In this document: one piece after another, positions 3,359-53,192 of the stretch
Position numbering within the stretch: the stretch's first letter is position 1
How the letters are laid out: the number at the start of each line of letters is the position of its first letter
Assembly: GCA_033442325.1 (NCBI GenBank)
Contig: JAWQFM010000007.1
Location: 1,778,019-1,831,210, forward strand
Source of the DNA: Salpingoeca rosetta
Taxonomy: Eukaryota; Protista; Choanoflagellata
Direction: 5' to 3'
DNA: 53,192 nt
Position numbers and translations under genes: made by a program
The notes under the pieces: model-generated
Databases searched by the model: none
What the model saw: only the letters and a program-made list of their open reading frames with translations
Told to the model about the DNA's origin: nothing

Positions 3359-4656
3359 GCACGCACGCACACACACACACACACTCACACACACACTCAC
3401 GCAAATACACACACTCACTCACGCAAACGCACACACACTCACGCAAATACACACACTCACTCACGCAAACACACACACACTCACGCAAATACACACACTC
3501 ACTCACGCAAACACACACACACTCACGCAAATACACACACTCACTCACGCAAACGCACACACACACACACACACTCTCTCTCTCCCTCTCGACGAAGCCG
3601 TACGATGATGACGTCGTCGAGTTGGGAGACGAGCGGATACGAGGAGCGATCGATGCCAATCAGATACGGTGTTGGCGCCGCGCAGAACTCAAGCAGAGAC
3701 CTGCAGCAGCAGGGTGGAGGGTTGGCGGTGAACTGGGGCAAACTGCAAGAAGACAGGGTGCCCTCAAATATCCACGTGCACACACACACACTCACACCGA
3801 CACCGACACAGACACAGACACACCGACACACACACACACACACACCGACACAGACACATGGCACGGAAAAGGACCACGCACGTTGGCAAGATGGGAATGT
3901 AGACGAGCGTGTATTCAAAGGGGAAGATGAGCTGGATGAGGGCCTCTGCACACGCGTGCAAGAGATTCGGGGAACTGCTGACCAGCAGCACTTTCCGCTC
4001 ACACAGCACTGCAAGGCAGCCCAGGGGAGACAGCGAGAAAGCGCAGGTGAGGGTGGCAATACGGGTATGTTTGCAGTTCGTATGCACAGGGTGAATCGTG
4101 TCACGACACATGAGCGTTACTAACGGACAGGCAGCAGCAGGGGCGCTGGAGTGCGGTGGTGTGCAACTCACGCGGAAAGACGAGGGAGATGACTTGGTGC
4201 GGCGAGAGGCATTTGAACAGCAGCGGTACCTGTAGGCGGCACCGGCAAAGCATGTGTTCATAAGCGCAAGTGTGAAGTAAGATAATACGCACGCACACAA
4301 GCATGTGCACACGAAGAAAGCACGTGCACACGAAGCAAGTGGTGAGAGAGAATGGTGTGTGCATATGTGCGCACACACATTTTCATAAGTATGTGCGTGA
4401 GCAGGGTGAGCGTACCATGCCAAATGGCGGCTGGAGGGAGAGTTGGGGCACGGCGGGGATGTGAAGTGTGCACGATTGCATCTCCAAGCGCAGGGCTTTC
4501 GCCGTCTGCGAAACCAAAATCAGACGCAAGTGCATGTTCAACGGATGGTGTGAGCACATACGCACTGCGCAAGCACAAGTAATCAACATGAAATGAACAT
4601 GAGACAACAGCCAACCTCTTCACAACTTGGCTGCTGCTCCTCCTGATGTCACAGCG

Positions 4657-4750
<94 letters not shown>

Positions 4751-6222
4751 CTGCTGCTACTGAACAAGGGTACCTTCGTGGATGGCACAGCCCTTAAAGA
4801 GGTGGCGGCAAAGACGAGCTGTTGCAGTCTTCGCAGCTCCTGCTGCCGATACAGCAGCCAGATCTCACGTAACAACGCCCTAGGGTGGAGGTGGGGATGG
4901 CAGTTGCGGAAAACGGATGAGTGGGAGGCCAGAGAGATAACCGAGGCGCTGAGGCGGATGGAGCGAAGATTGGAAGGCGTGTGCGCTGGATCTGGATCGA
5001 AGAGGCATCGGGTTCAGCAAGGCAGCGTAGTGCATCTTCATTGCGCACCTGTGCTCAGCGAAGAGGGGTCGGCGGGATACAATACCAATGCCGTGTGCAG
5101 ATCGCTGGCCGTTCTGCAGAAGTTGGGGAGGGGGAGGGGGAGGGGACGCAGGTGGTTGTGGCCATGGTAAGCGGCAAACAGCAACGTGGTGCTGAGACAC
5201 ACGCAGAAACACACACAGGCAGGCAGGCAGACACACAGACACACAGACACACAGACACACAATTGCACACAGAGCTGCACATGCCTGAATCACGGTGTGG
5301 ACCAGGCAGAGGGAAAAGATCCTGCGCCCCTCCTGTCATGATCAATGAAAGAACACATTTGTCACGACGAGCAAGTGGTTGACACCAGTGCTCGCTTGTT
5401 TGCGGAAAGCACTCCATGCACCACGCAGTGGGGCTTACATGTGGATCAAAGAACAAGTGTACCTCGTTGGTGAGAGACGTTGGGAAGAAGGTGAGTTGCT
5501 CCTCCTCATCGCGGGAGTGAGTTGAGCTTGCAGACGCTGATGGAGTCGTCGGCTCTGCCACTACCTCCTCCTCCTCGTCAAAGTCCGGCTGTTGTCGCGG
5601 CCATCGCAGTGCGTGAGCGAAGTGAAGTGTACAGCGTGAGCAGCAGGCAAGTAAACCCGGTTTCCACCAGCGAGCTTGAGGTGCACAGCGAACGGCACGA
5701 TCACCTCAAGACTCTGAATCAGCCAGTTGTACATGCGCCTGCATCTAGCGTGTGCTTGCACGAACCATCCCAAACACCCAACTCAAACACGACATCGCCG
5801 CATCACCCATCTCGGGCTCCTTGCACTCACAAAGCCGAAGGTTTGCAGGCCTGCTGGAAACGCGCAGTCATCATGATCTGCCTCGGGATACCGTGCAACT
5901 ACCTCTGCAGCGTCATCTCCTTCCTATCGTGTGTTTGAGGGAGGCGGAGGGGGGTAGTGGTTGCAATACAGGCACAAGTGCATAGTGAGCAAACATAAAC
6001 AAAGTGCGTCGCTGTTGGGAGTGACCAACCACAACTGCTTCACTTCAACCGTTCACTCTCTACACCCCCCCCTCTCTCTCTGTCTCTGTCTCTGTCTCTG
6101 TCTCTGTCTCTGTCTCTGTCTCTGTCTTTGTCTCTGTCTCTCTGTCTTCGAGCAGCAGGTTCGCAAGCACGCAGTCTCACCTGTCGCACGCTGAATACAA
6201 ATTCCACGAAGCGAGCGCGCAT
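64..6222 (-). CDS. SBF1/SBF2 (MTMR5/MTMR13)-like DENN-domain protein, multi-exon; 3' part runs off the left edge
   Basis: Exon 1 6222-6181 reads [14 protein letters not shown]. Exon from 5923 reads [27 protein letters not shown] (uDENN). Core DENN reads [43 protein letters not shown] / [17 protein letters not shown] (4020-3600). dDENN reads EIDIRLAFL / [21 protein letters not shown] (2800-2400), followed by [10 protein letters not shown] and [11 protein letters not shown]. The exon at ~245-64 reads [47 protein letters not shown], resembling the SBF2 domain. Exons are bounded by GT..AG. Confidence 0.85.
3383..3560. repeat. Intronic ~40-bp minisatellite (ACACACACACTCACGCAAATACACACACTCACTCACGCAA-like unit, about 4 copies)
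   Basis: Repeating unit read directly from the sequence, embedded in (CA)n. Confidence 0.8.
4658..4750. repeat. (CAA)n microsatellite, about 31 units, intronic
   Basis: Perfect trinucleotide run inside an intron of the DENN gene. Confidence 0.95.
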
Positions 6223-6387
6223 CTTGGGTGCTGGTCGCAACACAATGAATTGACGAGGGTTGTTGTTTCTGTGTGCGCTTGGCGACGTTGGTGCCTGTGG
6301 CTGCGTGGTGCGTGTGGGTTGGTGCGTTGGTGCGTGTGTGGGTTGGTGGTTGTCACATAACAACCGTGCGACAGCGTTGCTGGCTCC
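6223..6387. promoter_or_regulatory. Short divergent (bidirectional) promoter region with an RFX X-box-like element GTTGTCACATAACAAC at 6349-6364
   Basis: Only 165 bp separate the head-to-head ATGs (6222 on -, 6388 on +). A GTTGT...ACAAC inverted repeat lies about 25 bp before the NEK ATG. Confidence 0.5.
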
Positions 6388-7257
6388 ATGGAGGCGTACA
6401 CGCTGGTGGAGCGGGTTGGCCGCGGTGCAGAGGGCACCGTGTGGCTTGTGAAGCACAGGTGCGTTTTGTGACACGCTGTGATTCGCCTTGGTGCGCTGTC
6501 GTGTGCCCGACTGTCGTCGTCATCGCCGTCGTTGTTGTTGTTGTTGTGGAGAGGATGCAGCACGTGCACATACATGCACGTACACATGCACATACATGCA
6601 CGTACACATGCACATACATGCACGCACGCACACATGTACACATGTGCACACAAGCTTGTATGTGCACACTCATCAAGCATTGCTTTGCTGTGTCGTGTGG
6701 ATGATCGCAGGCAGTTGCCACGTCGCCGGTTTGTGATGAAGAAGATCTGGATCGGCGCGAAGAAGCGATCGTCATTGCAAGAAGCAGAGATCCTGAAGAA
6801 GCTCGACCATCGTCACGTTGTACGTCTTCTCTTCAGTAGTGCACATGGATTTGCAGCCATCTGCTGATCCTTTCTCGCTCCAGCTTGCATCCTCATGTGC
6901 GCACCCCCTCCCCCCCCCCACACACACACCAACCCGCCACTCAGATAAAGTATTATGACTCCTTCCTCGACAAGGCTGGCGAGCACCTGTGTATCATCAC
7001 TGACTACTGCGCGGTAGGTGATCCAGCTCGTCTTTGATGCCAGCAGCGCTTGCTTGACACACCACTTGTGTGCACACTCCGCCTAACGCTTGCCACATAC
7101 ACCCCTTTCACACGCAGGGCGGCAATCTGGACCAAAAGATCACAAGGACCCGAGAAGCAGGGCAGCATTTCAGGTCTGTGAAACTTGTTCCCCCCTTTTG
7201 ACTCTGGGACCAACATGCACTGCCCTTGCAATCGTTCCAAGTACTCACATCTTCCTC

Positions 7258-14116: not shown

Positions 14117-14216
14117 NNNNNNNNNNNNNNNNNNNNNNNNNNNNNNNNNNNNNNNNNNNNNNNNNNNNNNNNNNNNNNNNNNNNNNNNNNNNNNNNNNNN
14201 NNNNNNNNNNNNNNNN
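14117..14216. other. Assembly gap (100 N)
   Basis: Run of N. Confidence 1.
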
Positions 14217-46619: not shown

Positions 46620-49334
46620 ACACACGCCTACACAACAACACAGGCAACCAGGGTGCACTGAACGGCCCGCCAACTGCAGCGCGCACTCGCACAACGCACA
46701 ACGCAGCGGACGGCCACAAGAACCCATGACAACAGCGTACACCGCATCGTTCCCGGCGAGCGGCAGCCACTCAAACAGGCAGGCCGTCGCGTTGACGCGC
46801 ACATGCACCTCATTTAGCGCTGTCACCGGGCAGCCGGCAGCGTCGTCACCAGCGCAGGTGCACTGAACGGTCCGGCCACGGCACTCGTCACACCGCGCAC
46901 GCTCACGTTGTACGGCGTGGCCGGGCGAAGGTCACTGCTCGTGTATTCCCTGGCGTTGGTGTTGATGGTGGCGTTGGTGGTGGTGTTGTTGTTGTTGGTG
47001 GTGGTGGTGTCGCCGTTGGTGGGGAGCGTGATGATGCGAGTGAGGGGCCGGCGGCCAGGGGTTTCCATGCGCGTCTCCACGATTTGCACATCATACGCCA
47101 CGATGCGGCCGTTGGCGGGGGTCGGGGCGTTGATGTTCACCCGCACAGCGCGCTGCCGCACCTCCAGCACCAGCGGAGCGGCGGGTCTGCTCGGCACATC
47201 CTCTGCAGTCACAACACCTGCTGTTGTAAACCCGCTCACCCCGCGACCGTGCACAGCGCGCACACGCACGTCGTAGGCGGTGAACGGAAGCAGGCCGGTG
47301 ATTGTGGCGTGCAGCGGTGTTGCCAGCTCGTCCATACTCGCGGGCTCGTGATCAAGATAGCGACTGCACATGGGGGAGGCGTGCGTGGGTGTGATTTTGG
47401 GGGAAGGGAGGCGTGTGAGGCCAATAGTAGAGAGAGAGAGAGAGCGAGCAAAGATGAAGGAGGCGTACTGTGTGCATGGATCATGTTTGGTGTGGATGTG
47501 TGCAGCAGAAATGACGCACACGGGAAGTGCACACATGAACGTTGAGATTCGAATGGGATATGAACGTGCTCTCACACACACACACACATGCGTATATACA
47601 TACACACATACACACACATGCATATATACATACACACATACACACACAACGCACACTCAAACTCGCACTCCCCTTCACCACACATACACATACACTCAAA
47701 CTCACACTCCCCTTCACCACACACACACACACACACACTGAGCCTCTTGTCACATACTCGCCACTGGTTGTGCGGGAGCGGTGTGCGCGTGTCACCAGGA
47801 GGGAACGAGGTATTGGCACATGTGATGGGGAGCCACGCGTCCGTGGTGTTGTGCAGGCGGATATCGAGCGTGTAGTAGTCGATGGGAGCAAAGTTACCGT
47901 GGGGCCGCGGCCACGCAGCGGTGGCACTTGTCGGTGCTGCCGATGTCACGTTGAGTGTGGATGGCGCATCAGGATCAACTGCACGTCGGGGTATGTGTGT
48001 GCGTGTGTGTGCGTGTGCGTGGGGTTACGTGTGTCAGTGTGTCCGTGTGCGCACGTATCTGTGAAGGGATGGGTGACGCTGGTGCTCGCAAGGACAAACC
48101 CCATGAGTAAAGGCGTGTGCATGCGTAGTCTGTCTGAGCAAGCAAGTGCACGTATCATGTCCTCATGCAGTGCGTGTGTGCGGGCGTGTACGTGTGTGCC
48201 GTGTGCCTCATGCGGGTAGACATGCCACACCTCGGGTGCAGATGGTGATTGTCCCCGTTGTGTCTGCGATGAGGTGACCAGCCACCCTTTGCGGGCGGTG
48301 CATGCGACAAAGGGGAGGTCTTGTACAATGGAAACAGCGTCTCGGAACCACTCCATGCCACAACAGTACCACGGGTTGTCGCGCAAGTACCTGCAGCGTT
48401 GCAAGCAGCCAGCCATCATCGTGTATGTGAGTGGCTGACAAAAGCAAGACAACTTCGCAATGGCGTGGTGCTCCAGGCACGACAACTGTCGAGGTGCATC
48501 GTACAGCTGTGTGAGGTTGGCCCAGCGTGTGTCGTTGTTGTACACCAGCATCTCCAGCGTGTTGTTGTTCAGTCGCCTGTGTGTGTGTGTGGGGGGGGGT
48601 GTGTGAGTGTGTGTGTGAGAGGCTATGATATGAATGCAGATAGGATGAGCAAGGAAACTTGGTGCAAGGCTGCGTTTGTGGACGTGGATGTGGATGTGGA
48701 CTGTCGGTGTTTAGGGGGTGTGCACGCACGTGTGCCATGTGTGTGTGTTCAGTGAGGGGTGCTTTCGTTCTCGTCGTCTTCATGTGCACGTACAGGATGC
48801 TGAGTGGATTGTTGCCGATGATGTCAATGGAAAACGATGCCAGCCGGTTGTCGGCCAGTCTCCTGTCATTTGTCACGCAGGCGCACGTGTTGTGAAGATG
48901 AAGACACGTCAGCACATGCACATGAGTAAGTTTGTAGCAGAAACGTACACAAAGCGAGTGTGCAGGGGTTAGGAAGGTGTGGGCAAGGAATGACGTCGTG
49001 CTGAAATACACGCGCATGCACACACACGCATACATGCAGGGGCAAACACACACACACACACATACACACGGGCGCGCACACACACACCTTTGTTGTGCTA
49101 TGCGCCACTTGGAAGATTCCTGCCACGTAGCGCCCGCAAGCGTCTGACGTGACTGTCCGTTTGATGTTGCGGCAAGTATGCACGCCGTGCTGATTGACTG
49201 CAAACCGCTGGGATGCATCGTGCTGGTACAGCAGAAGTGATGTGTCACCCAAGTGGGAGCGGGACGCTAGTGTTCATGTTCACGGCCCCGTTGCTGCACA
49301 GGACATGAATGGCGAAAGTGTTTGAAGCGTACAC
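46620..49334 (-). pseudogene. LRR + LRRCT + fibronectin type III cell-surface protein gene with apparent frameshifts (pseudogene or sequencing errors); 5' end interrupted by the gap
   Basis: Short phase-2 LRR exons (RLADNRLASFSIDIIGNNPLSIL; RLNNNTLEMLVYNNDTRWANLTQL) and LRRCT YLRDNPWYCCGMEWF. FN3 repeats include PDAPSTLNVTSAAPTSATAAWPRP, ITGLLPFTAYDVRVRAV and DLRPATPYNVSVRGV. Frame breaks occur near 49255, 48294 and 46828. Confidence 0.7.
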
Positions 49335-49495: not shown

Positions 49496-49595
49496 NNNNN
49501 NNNNNNNNNNNNNNNNNNNNNNNNNNNNNNNNNNNNNNNNNNNNNNNNNNNNNNNNNNNNNNNNNNNNNNNNNNNNNNNNNNNNNNNNNNNNNNN
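49496..49595. other. Assembly gap (100 N)
   Basis: Run of N. Confidence 1.
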
Positions 49596-50086: not shown

Positions 50087-50454
50087 ACACAGACGTACAC
50101 AGACGTGCAGAAGCTCACGCTCACACGAACAAGCACAAACACACACGCGCGCCTGCATGCATGTGCCTCACTAACCGAGACGTGTCGTGAAATTCGTCAC
50201 TGGCTGGGCAACTCAATACGGTGCTCCGATGTTGGTCGCGAAATAGATGCAAGTCTCGCAGAAGTCAAAACGGTGCTGGACTCAATAATTTTACCAATCG
50301 CCAACAGCGGCAGCAGCTCATGCACTTGCCATGTTTGGCAATGACGCCATGTGAGTGTGGCAACGATCAGTTGGCAGGGTGCACCATCACATTTCACGGT
50401 GAACAGTACACGCAACACGCATTCCAACACCAACACACTGTTCTGCAATCAACG

Positions 50455-51190
50455 ATGGGTGTACGTGGCTTCTGGTCTCTGTTTGCAGACAGCACGGTGA
50501 GTGTGCACCTCGCAGAATTCAGCGGAAGCAGGGTGGGGGTGGATGCAATGATATACCTGCACAAAGGGGTCGCGGTCGGACGCGGAATTACGGTCTGCAC
50601 AGACCTTGTTGGGCGTTGTTCCAGGTTGAATATTGTGCCCGTCCTTGTCCTCGATGGTCAGGCACCGGTTATCAAGGCACCTGTACAAGCGAAGCGGCAA
50701 AGGGCAGCTTACCAACGAGGGATTGCCAGGCCGAGCCAGCACCAGTTAAAGGAATGGGCCGCCAAAAATGGAATCGGTGAGTCTGCTGGTGATACAAACT
50801 TGCCTTTGTTATGTTGGTGTTTTACAGCATTCGCACCGCACCAATCCTGTCGAAAACCTTCCCACACGTTTCACGACTCCGTCACTGACGCCACCACACC
50901 CCTACAAGCAAACGCACAGTACACCCCGCCCTAATGCAGTTCATGCACGCACCCATGTCTTGTGTACGTGCGGCGAAGAGGTGATACAGGCGCCCGGCGA
51001 AGCTGATGCCATGCTTGCCCACCTTCAACTTGAAGGCCAAATTGCAGCCATACTCACTGAGGATAGTGACCTGCTGGTGTACGGCGCAAGGTGAGAACTG
51101 GGCGCACGCATGCACATGTAAACAATAACACACACACTCACTCATACACATACACAAGCAAACGCCCACGCATACATTCATATCCACACG

Positions 51191-51224
<34 letters not shown>

Positions 51225-51325
51225 AGCAAACACCCACGCATACATTCATATCCACACAAACACACACACACACACACAAGCAAACACCCACGCATACATT
51301 CATATCCACACGAACACACACACAC

Positions 51326-51380
<55 letters not shown>

Positions 51381-53192
51381 AGCAAACACCCACGCACACA
51401 CATTCGACCACTCACCCGCGCACTCGCATACACACATACCCAGCAATGTGGTGTCACAAATAAAAGGCAATAGAGGAAGACGCCTCAGTTTCTGCAGCTT
51501 GCGCGAAGTTGGCGTGCCGCGGCACTCGTTGTCCCTGAAAAGTCTGACGCCTTCGATGCTGCAAATTGCAGCAATACTGGCAGGCTGTGACTACACCAAA
51601 GGCAGGGACAACGTTGGCTTATTGACAGCACTTCGCATCGTCATGGGCAAGCAATATACGGACGAAGAGGAGAAGACGGCCACACGCGCATTTCAAGAAC
51701 CGTTGGCTCAAGCCAGAGCCCACGCCCACGCCCACGCCCACGCCCACGCCCACGCCCACGCCCACGCCCACGCCCACGCCCACGCCCACACCTCCGTGGA
51801 CGAACCCGAGTTAGACAGTCATCGCGCGCACCTTCGTACGTTTTCCTCCATCGGTCTCGGCATACCACGCGCGAACGTAATCCAAATCTGCAGGTGCGTG
51901 AGTGTAAGCATAAGTGTGAGTGTGCATGTGTGAAAATATGTGTGCATGTGTAATATGTGTGTATGTGCAACAGTGTGCGTATGTGTGTATGTGCAACAGT
52001 GTGCGTGTCGATGTGATGTGCGAGAGTGTGAGAGAGAGACACGCACCAACTGCCACCTCACATGCACACGCGCGCATCTCTATATGACAGACCATTCAAA
52101 GCTTGTTCCACTCACCCTTGCCCGTTTGACGCACGCCTTGCAGATACGTGGGGGATATGCGCTGGGCGGTGACCGAAGCTATTCGGGATATGTACCTGAA
52201 GTGCGCGGAGGAGCACGACATACTTGGTGAGTTACAGGAGCTCGCACAAACAACGAGGAAACGCTACGTTCAAGCCAAGATCGACTTTCGCAAGACAGGC
52301 AAGTGGGACAAGGAAGTCAAAACGCCCACCGAGCCAGCTACGTTTTCAAGCAAGGTCGTTGAGCTGTCAGCCCACGGCATGGGCAGGGTGTGCACCCGCA
52401 TGCGCCAGCATGCACGCAACAAGGAGGCTCGCCAACCTGACCCACAGGGAATCGAGCGTTTCTTCGGCGACCGAGTGCCAACACGGCCATCATTCATGTC
52501 TGCCACTGCGGTAAGCCATATTTGCACACTTGAAGTTGGCGATGTTCTAAACGTAAATGTACCTCGGTGTCTTGTGCGTATGTGTGTGTGTGTGCAAGTG
52601 GGTGAGAGTGAATGTGTGTGTGTGTGAATGAATGTGATGTGAACGGGCGTGAGTGTATGCGCTAAACGTGCATGTGTGTTTGTGCAACAGTGCGCATGTT
52701 GATGCAAGAGTGAGAGTGAGAGACATGCACCGACTGCTACCCCCGCTTCAGCTTACCAGCCACCACGCGCCACATGTTCTTTTGCTTGCAGGCTCACACT
52801 CTTCTCAATCTGCAGTTTCGCCTCATGGAGGGAAACTGCCGGCTGTACCTTCGAGTGGCGGCCCGAAAGGCAGCAGCGCGCAGTTCGCGAGCCGGTGGCG
52901 GATGTCTTGGTATTGATGATGCCCGGCTTGCTTGTGTGTCTCTGGCGGAACAGGCGCTGTTCGTCGCCGCTTTGACACACAAGCAAGGTGGTGACACTTC
53001 AGCAGTTTTCCCGCGCTTCGCTGCTCGGCACCCATTCATCACGATCGACAGTTGTGCATGTCATGCACTGAAGTGCCAAGCCAGCGTGCTGTCCAAGAAC
53101 GTGCGCAGCATCCGCACAAACGGACACATCGCATACCTGATCCAGAAGAAGGCACCTGCGACCTCCACCGCGACCTCCAGTTCCCGGCAGCA
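50455..53192 (+). CDS. XPG/FEN1/Exo1-family 5' nuclease fused to a C-terminal region with Fanzor1/TnpB-like motifs; spliced; runs off the right edge
   Basis: Exons 50455-50776, 50979-51090, 51444-51893, 52144-52510 and 52792->53192 join in frame with GT..AG sites. Nuclease motifs are MGVRGFW, RVGVDAMIYLHKG, VLVLDG, APGEADAMLAHL, ILTEDSDLLVYG and H3TH ILAGCDYTKGRDNVGLLTALRIV. An (AH)12 linker is followed by about 300 aa still open at the window end, containing FPRFAARHPFITID and SIRTNGHIAYL. The nuclease call is firm; the Fanzor call is tentative. Confidence 0.8.
51718..51789 (+). repeat. Coding (GCCCAC)12 repeat encoding an (Ala-His)12 linker
   Basis: Perfect hexamer repeat inside exon 3 of the nuclease gene, in frame. 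Confidence 0.9.

Follow-up and report, generated by a model that had tools for sequence, protein, structure and literature searches.

A predicted EXO1-like nuclease–Fanzor fusion gene in the choanoflagellate Salpingoeca rosetta

The 53,192-nucleotide stretch of the Salpingoeca rosetta genome analyzed here (G000:C7:1778019-1831210; the window) ends within an unannotated gene on its + strand, whose first five of seven exons (50455-53192) lie inside the window and all join in frame through GT..AG introns. The explanation that best accounts for the whole, to which we assign a probability of about 0.68, is that this gene encodes an EXO1-like nuclease joined to a Fanzor and that it is related to SAl-2, a Fanzor family of the same genome, from which it has diverged and relative to which it is low in copy number and apparently immobile. 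Fanzors are the TnpB-like DNA nucleases of eukaryotes and are normally guided by RNA. The predicted fusion architecture is well supported by comparison with SAl-2, not by RNA. An XPG/Exo1 nuclease–Fanzor fusion had originally been predicted from the letters of the window; its architecture is upheld by the SAl-2 comparison and by a linking intron common to both families, but no coding-strand mRNA joining the exons in question was seen in the samples examined. Fanzors in S. rosetta are already known. The window subfamily and the nuclease domain are new to the published literature that we searched, which yielded no Fanzor with a second, XPG-family nuclease domain and returned only unrelated or engineering papers.

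Organization of the gene

Inside the window, the gene is laid out as follows:

50455..50776, + strand: exon 1, N-terminal half of the EXO1-like XPG_N domain (model residues 1-107), with D30, D67, and the arch-base K/R pair
50777..50978, + strand: predicted intron 1 (GTGAGT..AG, phase 1), read from the sequence and interrupting the E108 codon (I|E)
50979..51090, + strand: exon 2, XPG_I core, with E115, D117, D136, and D138 (GEAD, EDSD)
51444..51893, + strand: exon 3, remainder of the nuclease domain in a continuous frame (GCDY with D194, H3TH-like stretch), then (AH)12
51894..52143, + strand: predicted intron 3 (GTGCGT..CAG, phase 2), between the nuclease exon and the Fanzor exons (CR|Y)
52144..52510, + strand: exon 4 (model residues 295-417), helical region at the N terminus of the Fanzor part
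52792..53192, + strand: exon 5, first 133 codons, ended by the window edge, with WED-like FPRFAARHPFITID and SIRTNGHIAYL

The five in-frame exons are borne out, and the motifs that had been listed, including the linker and those of the Fanzor side, lie exactly where they had been placed. On the nuclease side, the landmarks are the ATG (50455), VGVDAM (50533-50550), LVLDG (50644-50658), GEADAM (50996-51013), TEDSDLL (51056-51076), GCDY (51583-51594), and the (AH)12 linker (51718-51789); on the Fanzor side, they are YVGDMRWAVTEAIRDMYL (52145-52198), FPRFAARHPFITID (53008-53049), and SIRTNGHIAYL (53107-53139). Exon 3 closes with a 22-residue segment (~51828-51893, ...FSSIGLGIPRANVIQIC/R; FSSIGLGIPRANVIQICR) that follows the GCDY/H3TH part in one open frame. 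CA/GT repeats are abundant in the introns, and the gene model contains low-complexity inserts.

Sequence past position 53192 was taken from a second copy of the gene on C2 (L004 = G000:C2:2272000-2281999) and from RNA contigs, not from the C7 contig. The model joins the window exons up to 53186 with L004:5068-5523, 8 nucleotides (nt) supplied by transcripts, and L004:5524-5584, 5692-5916, and 6018-6225, and comprises 867 codons without a stop in seven exons, with every intron GT-AG.

An architecture shared with SAl-2

Two Fanzor2 families were described by Bao and Jurka in 2013 from this strain of S. rosetta (Salpingoeca sp. ATCC 50818) (PMC3627910). One of them, SAl-2, was given as a protein of 498 residues encoded by four exons, with three copies, a right end only, and no transposase; no nuclease domain is mentioned for it, and the window subfamily is absent from the paper's families (PMC3627910). 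SAl-2 was thus filed under Fanzor2, whereas the original prediction had argued from Fanzor1 motifs (PMC3627910). Exact look-up retrieved four paralogous S. rosetta proteins: PTSG_12014 (to which the published SAl-2 corresponds), PTSG_12556, PTSG_04012, and PTSG_11538. Three sets of observations tie the window gene to this family, in which EXO1-like exons also precede Fanzor exons.

(i) The proteins align across the two parts. PTSG_12556 (P0006; 948 residues), whose model starts right after an assembly gap, unites the end of the nuclease domain with the Fanzor part, and BLASTP places it in a single alignment with our model (273-841 versus 241-939; 569 model residues, 29% identity, E = 1e-72) that begins inside exon 3 and spans the exon 3|4 junction (residues 294/295). 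Exon 3 is matched by SAl-2-family paralog exons (tblastn), its segment FSSIGLGIPRANVIQICR being homologous to the small SAl-2 exon that precedes the Fanzor core (FKRLGVELERSKVLEMCR). Exon 4 is 43 to 44% identical to the matching exon at four SAl-2-family loci and aligns to residues 263-440 of PTSG_12556, and exon 5 is 38% identical to SAl-2. Motifs held in common include FFG.C, VH.GRGGG,.EFRTT.YSLCCAWP, and DRD.AAA.

(ii) Five introns agree in position and phase between the two: I|E (in the nuclease domain), CR|Y, (M/A)|A, FFG(D/A)|C, and IA(A/C)|R. The intron that links the two parts (TGC AG|GT ... AG|N TAY, coding CR|Y) is one of these five. Given the shared order and introns, the fusion and its introns would predate the split between the window family and SAl-2.

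(iii) The nuclease belongs to the repeated SAl-2 unit. The unit includes, upstream of the SAl-2-family Fanzor exons and on their strand, exons that match XPG_N (26.9 and 35.2 bits) and XPG_I (65.1 bits) and encode a nuclease with a full-length EXO1-like arch and H3TH region. Differences among SAl-2-family copies comprise 41 synonymous versus 29 nonsynonymous changes over as many as 940 stop-free codons, nuclease and linking exons included; unconstrained change is expected to yield about three nonsynonymous changes for each synonymous one.

The SAl-2-family copies on C8, C12, C10, and C1 are 94 to 98% mutually identical, and four copies stop at the same base ("...CGCCCGCGGTCA|"; L030:3070-3200 [- strand], L028, L029, and L027), after which their flanks are unrelated. 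Near-identical copies with a sharp 3' end and unrelated flanks indicate that the SAl-2 family is mobile now or was so recently. The last ~50 nt fold into a strong hairpin (z = -2.4 over 131 nt), and the common 3' end is a candidate for the right end of the element or for the end of a guide-RNA scaffold. No Pfam transposase was detected in the six long open reading frames (ORFs) upstream of the nuclease exons in the repeat unit, and one gene neighboring the unit has only a weak DDE_3 match.

From these comparisons, we consider it likely that the fusion was inherited and that both nucleases reside in one protein. A chance arrangement, in which a Fanzor element inserted next to an EXO1 paralog of the host and the exons join in frame by coincidence or through an artifact of the gene model, is extremely improbable and close to refuted. 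S. rosetta does have several other XPG-family loci, and Fanzors are mobile. But the same order, strand, and linking intron recur in a second family at four or more insertion sites, unrelated to each other, where the copies share a sharp 3' end, the nuclease exons of that family fall within the repeated unit, and four other XPG_I loci that we retrieved have no Fanzor in the retrieved stretch. We have therefore rejected chance adjacency, the same layout being present in the SAl-2 repeated units.

The window gene nevertheless differs from SAl-2 in more than its ~29% identity over the aligned part: it lacks the at least four mobile copies, the sharp 3' end, the terminal hairpin, the full arch and H3TH, and the CCHC knuckle of that family.

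The N-terminal EXO1-like nuclease

Exon 1 matches Pfam XPG_N at 40.9 bits (window 50455-50775) and exon 2 matches XPG_I at 47.4 bits (window 50981-51088), both above the gathering cut-offs (22 bits for XPG_N and 24.9 for XPG_I; that for Cas12f1-like_TNB, used below, is 26.3). Among solved structures, human EXO1 is the best relative of these two exons (phmmer; PDB 3QEA/5V0x), with residues 1-82 aligning to EXO1 1-93 and exon 2 to EXO1 146-178 (E = 7e-6). All seven acidic metal-binding residues of the EXO1 family are present in the model as D30, D67, E115, D117, D136, D138, and D194. EXO1 D30, D78, E150, D152, D171, and D173 are aligned directly (phmmer); the seventh (D194, the equivalent of EXO1 D225) is placed through GCDY, itself aligned to the paralog GCDY, and through a weak match to NCBIfam fen_arch (positions 216-261), whereas a direct search of the GCDY exon against the PDB returned no match. 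The model likewise retains the K/R pair of the EXO1 arch base. The domain matches, EXO1 alignments, and located motifs together agree with the earlier reading of this region as an XPG/FEN1/Exo1 nuclease with its acidic catalytic positions.

The likeness to EXO1 and the wider XPG/Rad2/FEN1 family has limits. The helical arch, as had been proposed, is shortened: 47 residues separate D67 from E115, versus 71 between D78 and E150 in human EXO1, a difference of about 25. The complete arch and the H3TH/C-terminal helices of the EXO1 catalytic domain are absent, such that after GCDY...LRIVMG the helices that would follow the H3TH give way to the linker, and the C-terminal tail through which EXO1 binds MSH2, MLH1, and PCNA is replaced by the Fanzor. 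The N terminus of the window gene is thus predicted, from its sequence, to be a 5' nuclease of the XPG/Rad2 family that resembles a compact, slimmed EXO1.

The Fanzor part

In the C2 copy, the frame of exon 5 (L004:5068-5584) runs on into VVGLDPGTRKPLVAV and then into a long acidic low-complexity stretch, and two further exons follow, with ...GRGGGAKSSTLRLRRMLEARAPLQTVDEFRTTRYSLCCAWPRDIDASRQSRCKSCGDTRDRDAAAAVTIAC... among their sequence. The original prediction had proposed looking downstream of the window for a RuvC triad and a zinc finger, and these were found in the C2 copy and transcripts. RuvC-I (VVGLDPGT; D576 in the model) lies ~45 codons past the window end. The RuvC-II region is rearranged: within IFFGAC, G722 and A723 occupy the place of the canonical Glu, and E755, in VDEFRTT, comes 33 residues later, a placement based on motifs and paralog alignment, not on structure. 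A C4 zinc ribbon (Cys764/765/779/782) precedes RuvC-III (R788-D789). Published Fanzors have Gly or Pro in place of the RuvC-II Glu and an alternative Glu ~45 residues on (PMC10530073).

Exon 6 of the C2 copy matches Pfam Cas12f1-like_TNB (OrfB_Zn_ribbon) at 29.3 bits, above its cut-off (L004:5657-5914), and, weakly, the NCBIfam guided_TnpB C-terminal model (E = 0.0015). The motif that Bao and Jurka set for Fanzors, D-X(125,275)-[TS][TS]-X-X-[C4 zinc finger]-X(5,50)-RD (PMC3627910), is recovered as D576, 181 residues, T758-T759, the C4 cysteines, and R788-D789, all of them past the window and from the C2 copy. The TT pair and the first Cys are four residues apart rather than two, in the model as in SAl-2, for which Bao and Jurka accepted this spacing (PMC3627910). 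Upstream, inside the window, the original prediction had relied on a pair of Fanzor motifs ahead of the RuvC-I aspartate; F..P....H..I.D and I.T(D/N)G do precede DPG in published Fanzor sequences.

Searches on protein-language-model features place exon 5 next to eukaryotic DUF8286/TNB clusters (scores of 0.97 to 0.98), and SAl-2 together with window-subfamily exon 5 near eukaryotic and giant-virus TNB/DUF8286 clusters (0.94 to 0.98). AlphaFold2 models reached a mean predicted local distance difference test score of 39.9 for residues 240-948 of PTSG_12556 (six-row alignment) and 41.3 for a 192-residue WED/RuvC-I piece (two alignment rows), both too low for fold comparison. By sequence (phmmer versus PDB), no Fanzor, TnpB, or Cas12 chain of solved structure was matched, the CCHC knuckle giving the only match; a word-indexed search with the paralog model P0001, whole and as residues 385-485, found its own family only. 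Overall, the evidence supports the prediction of a TnpB-derived, Fanzor-type nuclease in the C-terminal part.

Copies of the window gene

The original prediction had also suggested a search for further genome copies, and these exist: the C2 copy, a fragment on C16, and the sister SAl-2 family. Exons 1, 2, and 4 are 100% identical between the window and C2, with introns and flanks differing at ~3% of columns (42/1,467), and the similarity of C7 to C2 extends at least 5 kb more upstream of the gene. Similarity that continues past the gene indicates duplicated chromosome segments, not transposon copies. The C16 fragment (L026 = G000:C16:794500-804499; 5834-6640) is 811 bp long and ~96% identical (96% in exon 4), reaches only from the end of exon 3, through intron 3 and exon 4, into intron 4, and has one TAA in exon 4. 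The context of the window gene is therefore not that of a multicopy mobile element: it occurs in the duplicated segments of C7 and C2 only, plus the C16 fragment.

Length differences in the low-complexity linkers of the window gene amount to whole codons: C2 has 10 more codons in its AH repeat than the window, and in RNA run X6, insertions of 15 nt (L004:5286) and 18 nt (L004:5337) occur in an acidic Asp/Gly repeat past the window end.

Evidence against the fusion and alternative readings

Several observations weigh against an EXO1-Fanzor fusion at the window locus; they concern the state of the sequence, the RNA, the gene models of the paralogs, the 3' flank, and the breadth of the family.

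To begin with, the C-terminal third of the gene comes from the C2 copy and RNA contigs rather than from C7, and the C2 copy has defects of its own. Its exon 3 has a 56-nt deletion and a frame-breaking local duplication or rearrangement (L004:3402, 3488-3545), and it lacks 8 nt (AGCTTACA) that transcripts carry after L004:5523. With these 8 nt, the frame reads ...RISKELWRRLGPSQIFFGA|C-VHRGRGGG, alongside ...VFFGD|C-VHKGRGGG in the sister SAl-2 family. Because the insertion restores a frame that matches the paralogs, C2 is a damaged copy, either a decaying duplicate or a misassembly. The window itself has one irregularity close to its edge:

53187..53187, + strand: one extra G relative to the C2 copy (pairwise comparison)

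This G is either a reference error, which is likely, or a real frameshift; no insertion was reported for raw reads or contigs at the equivalent position (L004:5067). If real, it shifts the frame into a stop ~13 codons on, given downstream sequence like that of C2.

RNA was examined by aligning the stranded runs X19 and X20 and the contig sets X4 and X6 to L004:2100-6400. None of the four predicted coding-strand introns in the window was seen in X19, X20, or the two contig sets, and no coding-strand mRNA linking the nuclease and Fanzor exons was found in the runs and contigs examined. The sole coding-strand joint (GT..AG at L004:5916/6018) is in one X6 contig and coincides with the predicted last intron. 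Reads bear the alleles of the window, namely the 56-nt segment at 51487-51542 that is absent in C2 and an A at 51862, so that the RNA derives from the window locus. First mates fall almost entirely on the + strand in X19 and X20 (depths of 12 to 109 in exon-covering bins, versus 0 to 4 with first mates on -), and every well-supported joint reads CT..AC on the + strand, from which it follows that the dominant RNA is a spliced minus-strand transcript, antisense to the whole gene:

50180..53192, - strand: spliced antisense RNA, with exons at ~<=50180-50324, 50557-50707, 50953-51070, 51440-51590, 51832-51887, 52116-52195, 52446-52570, and 52849-53192+

This RNA has seven introns (CT..AC on the + strand) and crosses the last three coding-strand exons unspliced. 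A scan of it turned up mirror and low-complexity ORFs only, none of them convincing. The RNA may belong to the convergent gene downstream, as a long 3' extension, or may be a noncoding transcript in its own right.

The RNA data bear on a possible but unlikely reading, in which the + strand frame is a noncoding fossil of a once-fused gene and the present product of the locus is the minus-strand spliced RNA, be it a long noncoding RNA or the 3' extension of the downstream gene. The dominance of the antisense RNA in X19 and X20, with its seven CT..AC introns, speaks for such a reading, and the extra G in the reference, a C2 twin broken in at least two places, the reduced nuclease domain with its low-complexity inserts, and the lack of a mobile end or structured 3' flank all agree with it. 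Yet no stop interrupts the 867 codons even though ~70% of residues differ from the sister family, which would be unexpected were the gene long dead, and the catalytic residues of both nucleases are all kept. In addition, one coding-strand splice joint does occur (run X6), few samples were covered, and the transcripts favor the extra G being a reference error.

Gene models of the paralogs raise a different objection, as some begin at a Met after the junction (P0002, MKCTATT...) or later still (P0001). Two adjacent genes, inherited as a module, could produce this pattern: an EXO1-like gene stopping at 51931-51933 and a Fanzor gene starting from Met299 (ATG 52157, exon 4), whose products might still cooperate. 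Read-through of the exon 3 donor would reach a stop 13 codons on (ORF 51091..51933), a Met stands 5 codons past the acceptor in both families (MRW and MKC) and is the one at which the P0002 model begins, and no reads join exon 3 to exon 4. We regard this arrangement as quite unlikely in view of the junction itself: the donor (TGC AG|GT) and acceptor (AG|N TAY) hold the same place and phase in families that are ~29% identical over the aligned part, the residues to either side are conserved (..V[IL][QE][IM]CR|Y.G.M), annotated PTSG_12556 splices over the junction, and the linking exons of SAl-2 contain no stop.

The 3' side of the window subfamily, for its part, offers no guide-RNA-like region or element end. 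Its flank has no similarity to the SAl-2 3' end, and no guide-RNA region common to the two subfamilies was found in their 3' ends. Over 350 nt, the flank folds no better than shuffled sequences (z = +1.2), and so the conserved, structured 3' flank (omegaRNA) that the original prediction had proposed to look for was not found for this subfamily.

Lastly, a profile of the WED and RuvC-I regions, searched against 1.84 billion representative proteins, recovered two S. rosetta clusters only. With no relative of the N-terminal Fanzor half found outside S. rosetta, no independent lineage confirms the architecture.

A proposed mechanism

EXO1-type enzymes resect 5' strands at breaks. In the fusion protein that we favor, a RuvC domain loaded with guide RNA would cut its target, the attached EXO1-like domain would then resect the 5' strands, and resection would commit repair to homologous recombination at the expense of end joining. 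TnpB and Fanzor nucleases probably aid the persistence of their elements, in that they cut emptied sites, so that homologous recombination restores the element (10.1101/2023.03.14.532601; PMC10690162), and their guide RNA comes from the end of the element (PMC10690162; PMC10530073). For the mobile SAl-2 family, a fusion that cuts and resects would make a coherent selfish strategy, and guided cutting plus resection is likewise predicted for the window protein, from the domains that its sequence encodes.

The window copy, on the other hand, may be silenced, conditionally expressed, co-opted by the host, or starting to decay. One tentative and rather improbable scenario has an old EXO1-Fanzor fusion splitting into the mobile SAl-2 and a fixed, intron-rich, slimmed copy that was co-opted as a programmable cut-and-resect enzyme, with the abundant antisense RNA as its regulator. 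Under such co-option, the enzyme might start recombination at chosen sites or defend against related elements.

Comparison with known systems

The Fanzor part resembles described Fanzor and TnpB nucleases (Saito 2023, PMC10432273; Jiang 2023, PMC10530073) in that its RuvC triad is split, with Gly where RuvC-II has its Glu and an alternative Glu farther downstream, and in its TNB zinc ribbon, its introns, and its N-terminal extension. It differs from them in that no guide RNA, target-adjacent motif, transposon end, or associated transposase was found for the window copy and in that the N-terminal Fanzor half is without detectable relatives beyond S. rosetta.

To make editing more efficient, genome engineers have built fusions of exonucleases with Cas, TnpB, or Fanzor (PMC11471210), which likewise join a programmable RuvC nuclease covalently to an end-processing exonuclease. 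Those proteins are man-made and use T5, TREX2, or similar enzymes, whereas the window gene is natural and intron-bearing, with an EXO1-type domain at its N terminus and an activity that is predicted.

AcademX DNA transposons, whose nuclease is of the XPG type, offer a parallel as eukaryotic mobile elements with an accessory nuclease. In Academ elements the transposase is of the DDE type and a Fanzor is absent, whereas no DDE transposase was found in the scanned ORFs next to the SAl-2-family unit. The placement of the AcademX nuclease beside the transposase is given in the passage of PMC10045372 that cites Kojima 2020.

In eukaryotes, end joining competes with the homologous-recombination route. 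If the proposal is true, a Fanzor equipped with an EXO1-type domain for resection would meet this competition in a natural way and would resemble the exonuclease fusions built by genome engineers. It also yields a testable idea, namely, that built-in resection biases repair towards recombination, and S. rosetta is both culturable and amenable to genome editing. Being reduced, probably immobile, and without observed coding-strand expression, the window copy carries less weight in this respect, and the SAl-2 copies are the better experimental material.

Other features of the SAl-2 family, the genome, and the window

SAl-2-family proteins contain, in their WED-like region, a retroviral-type CCHC zinc knuckle (PTSG_12556 538-558; P0002 277-293), which is absent in the window subfamily. 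PTSG_11538 (P0007, 1523 amino acids) combines a Ty1/copia polyprotein (rve, RVT_2) with the Fanzor part of an SAl-2-family copy, a chimera that likely arose from a retrotransposon inserted in the upstream exons of that copy.

Other TNB loci in the genome are at C14:437439-437645 and C29:224083-224289 (both 56 to 57 bits) and at C6:2025739-2025882. The C14 and C29 loci may represent the SAl-1 family, and a genome scan for XPG_I returned no match adjoining these two, which are the strongest TNB loci.

Around the gene, an ORF with an fn3 domain lies upstream (window 46826-47656, - strand), and downstream the - strand carries a long open frame. The window contains two 100-N scaffold gaps, at 14117-14216 and 49496-49595, the latter 860 bp upstream of the ATG of the gene.

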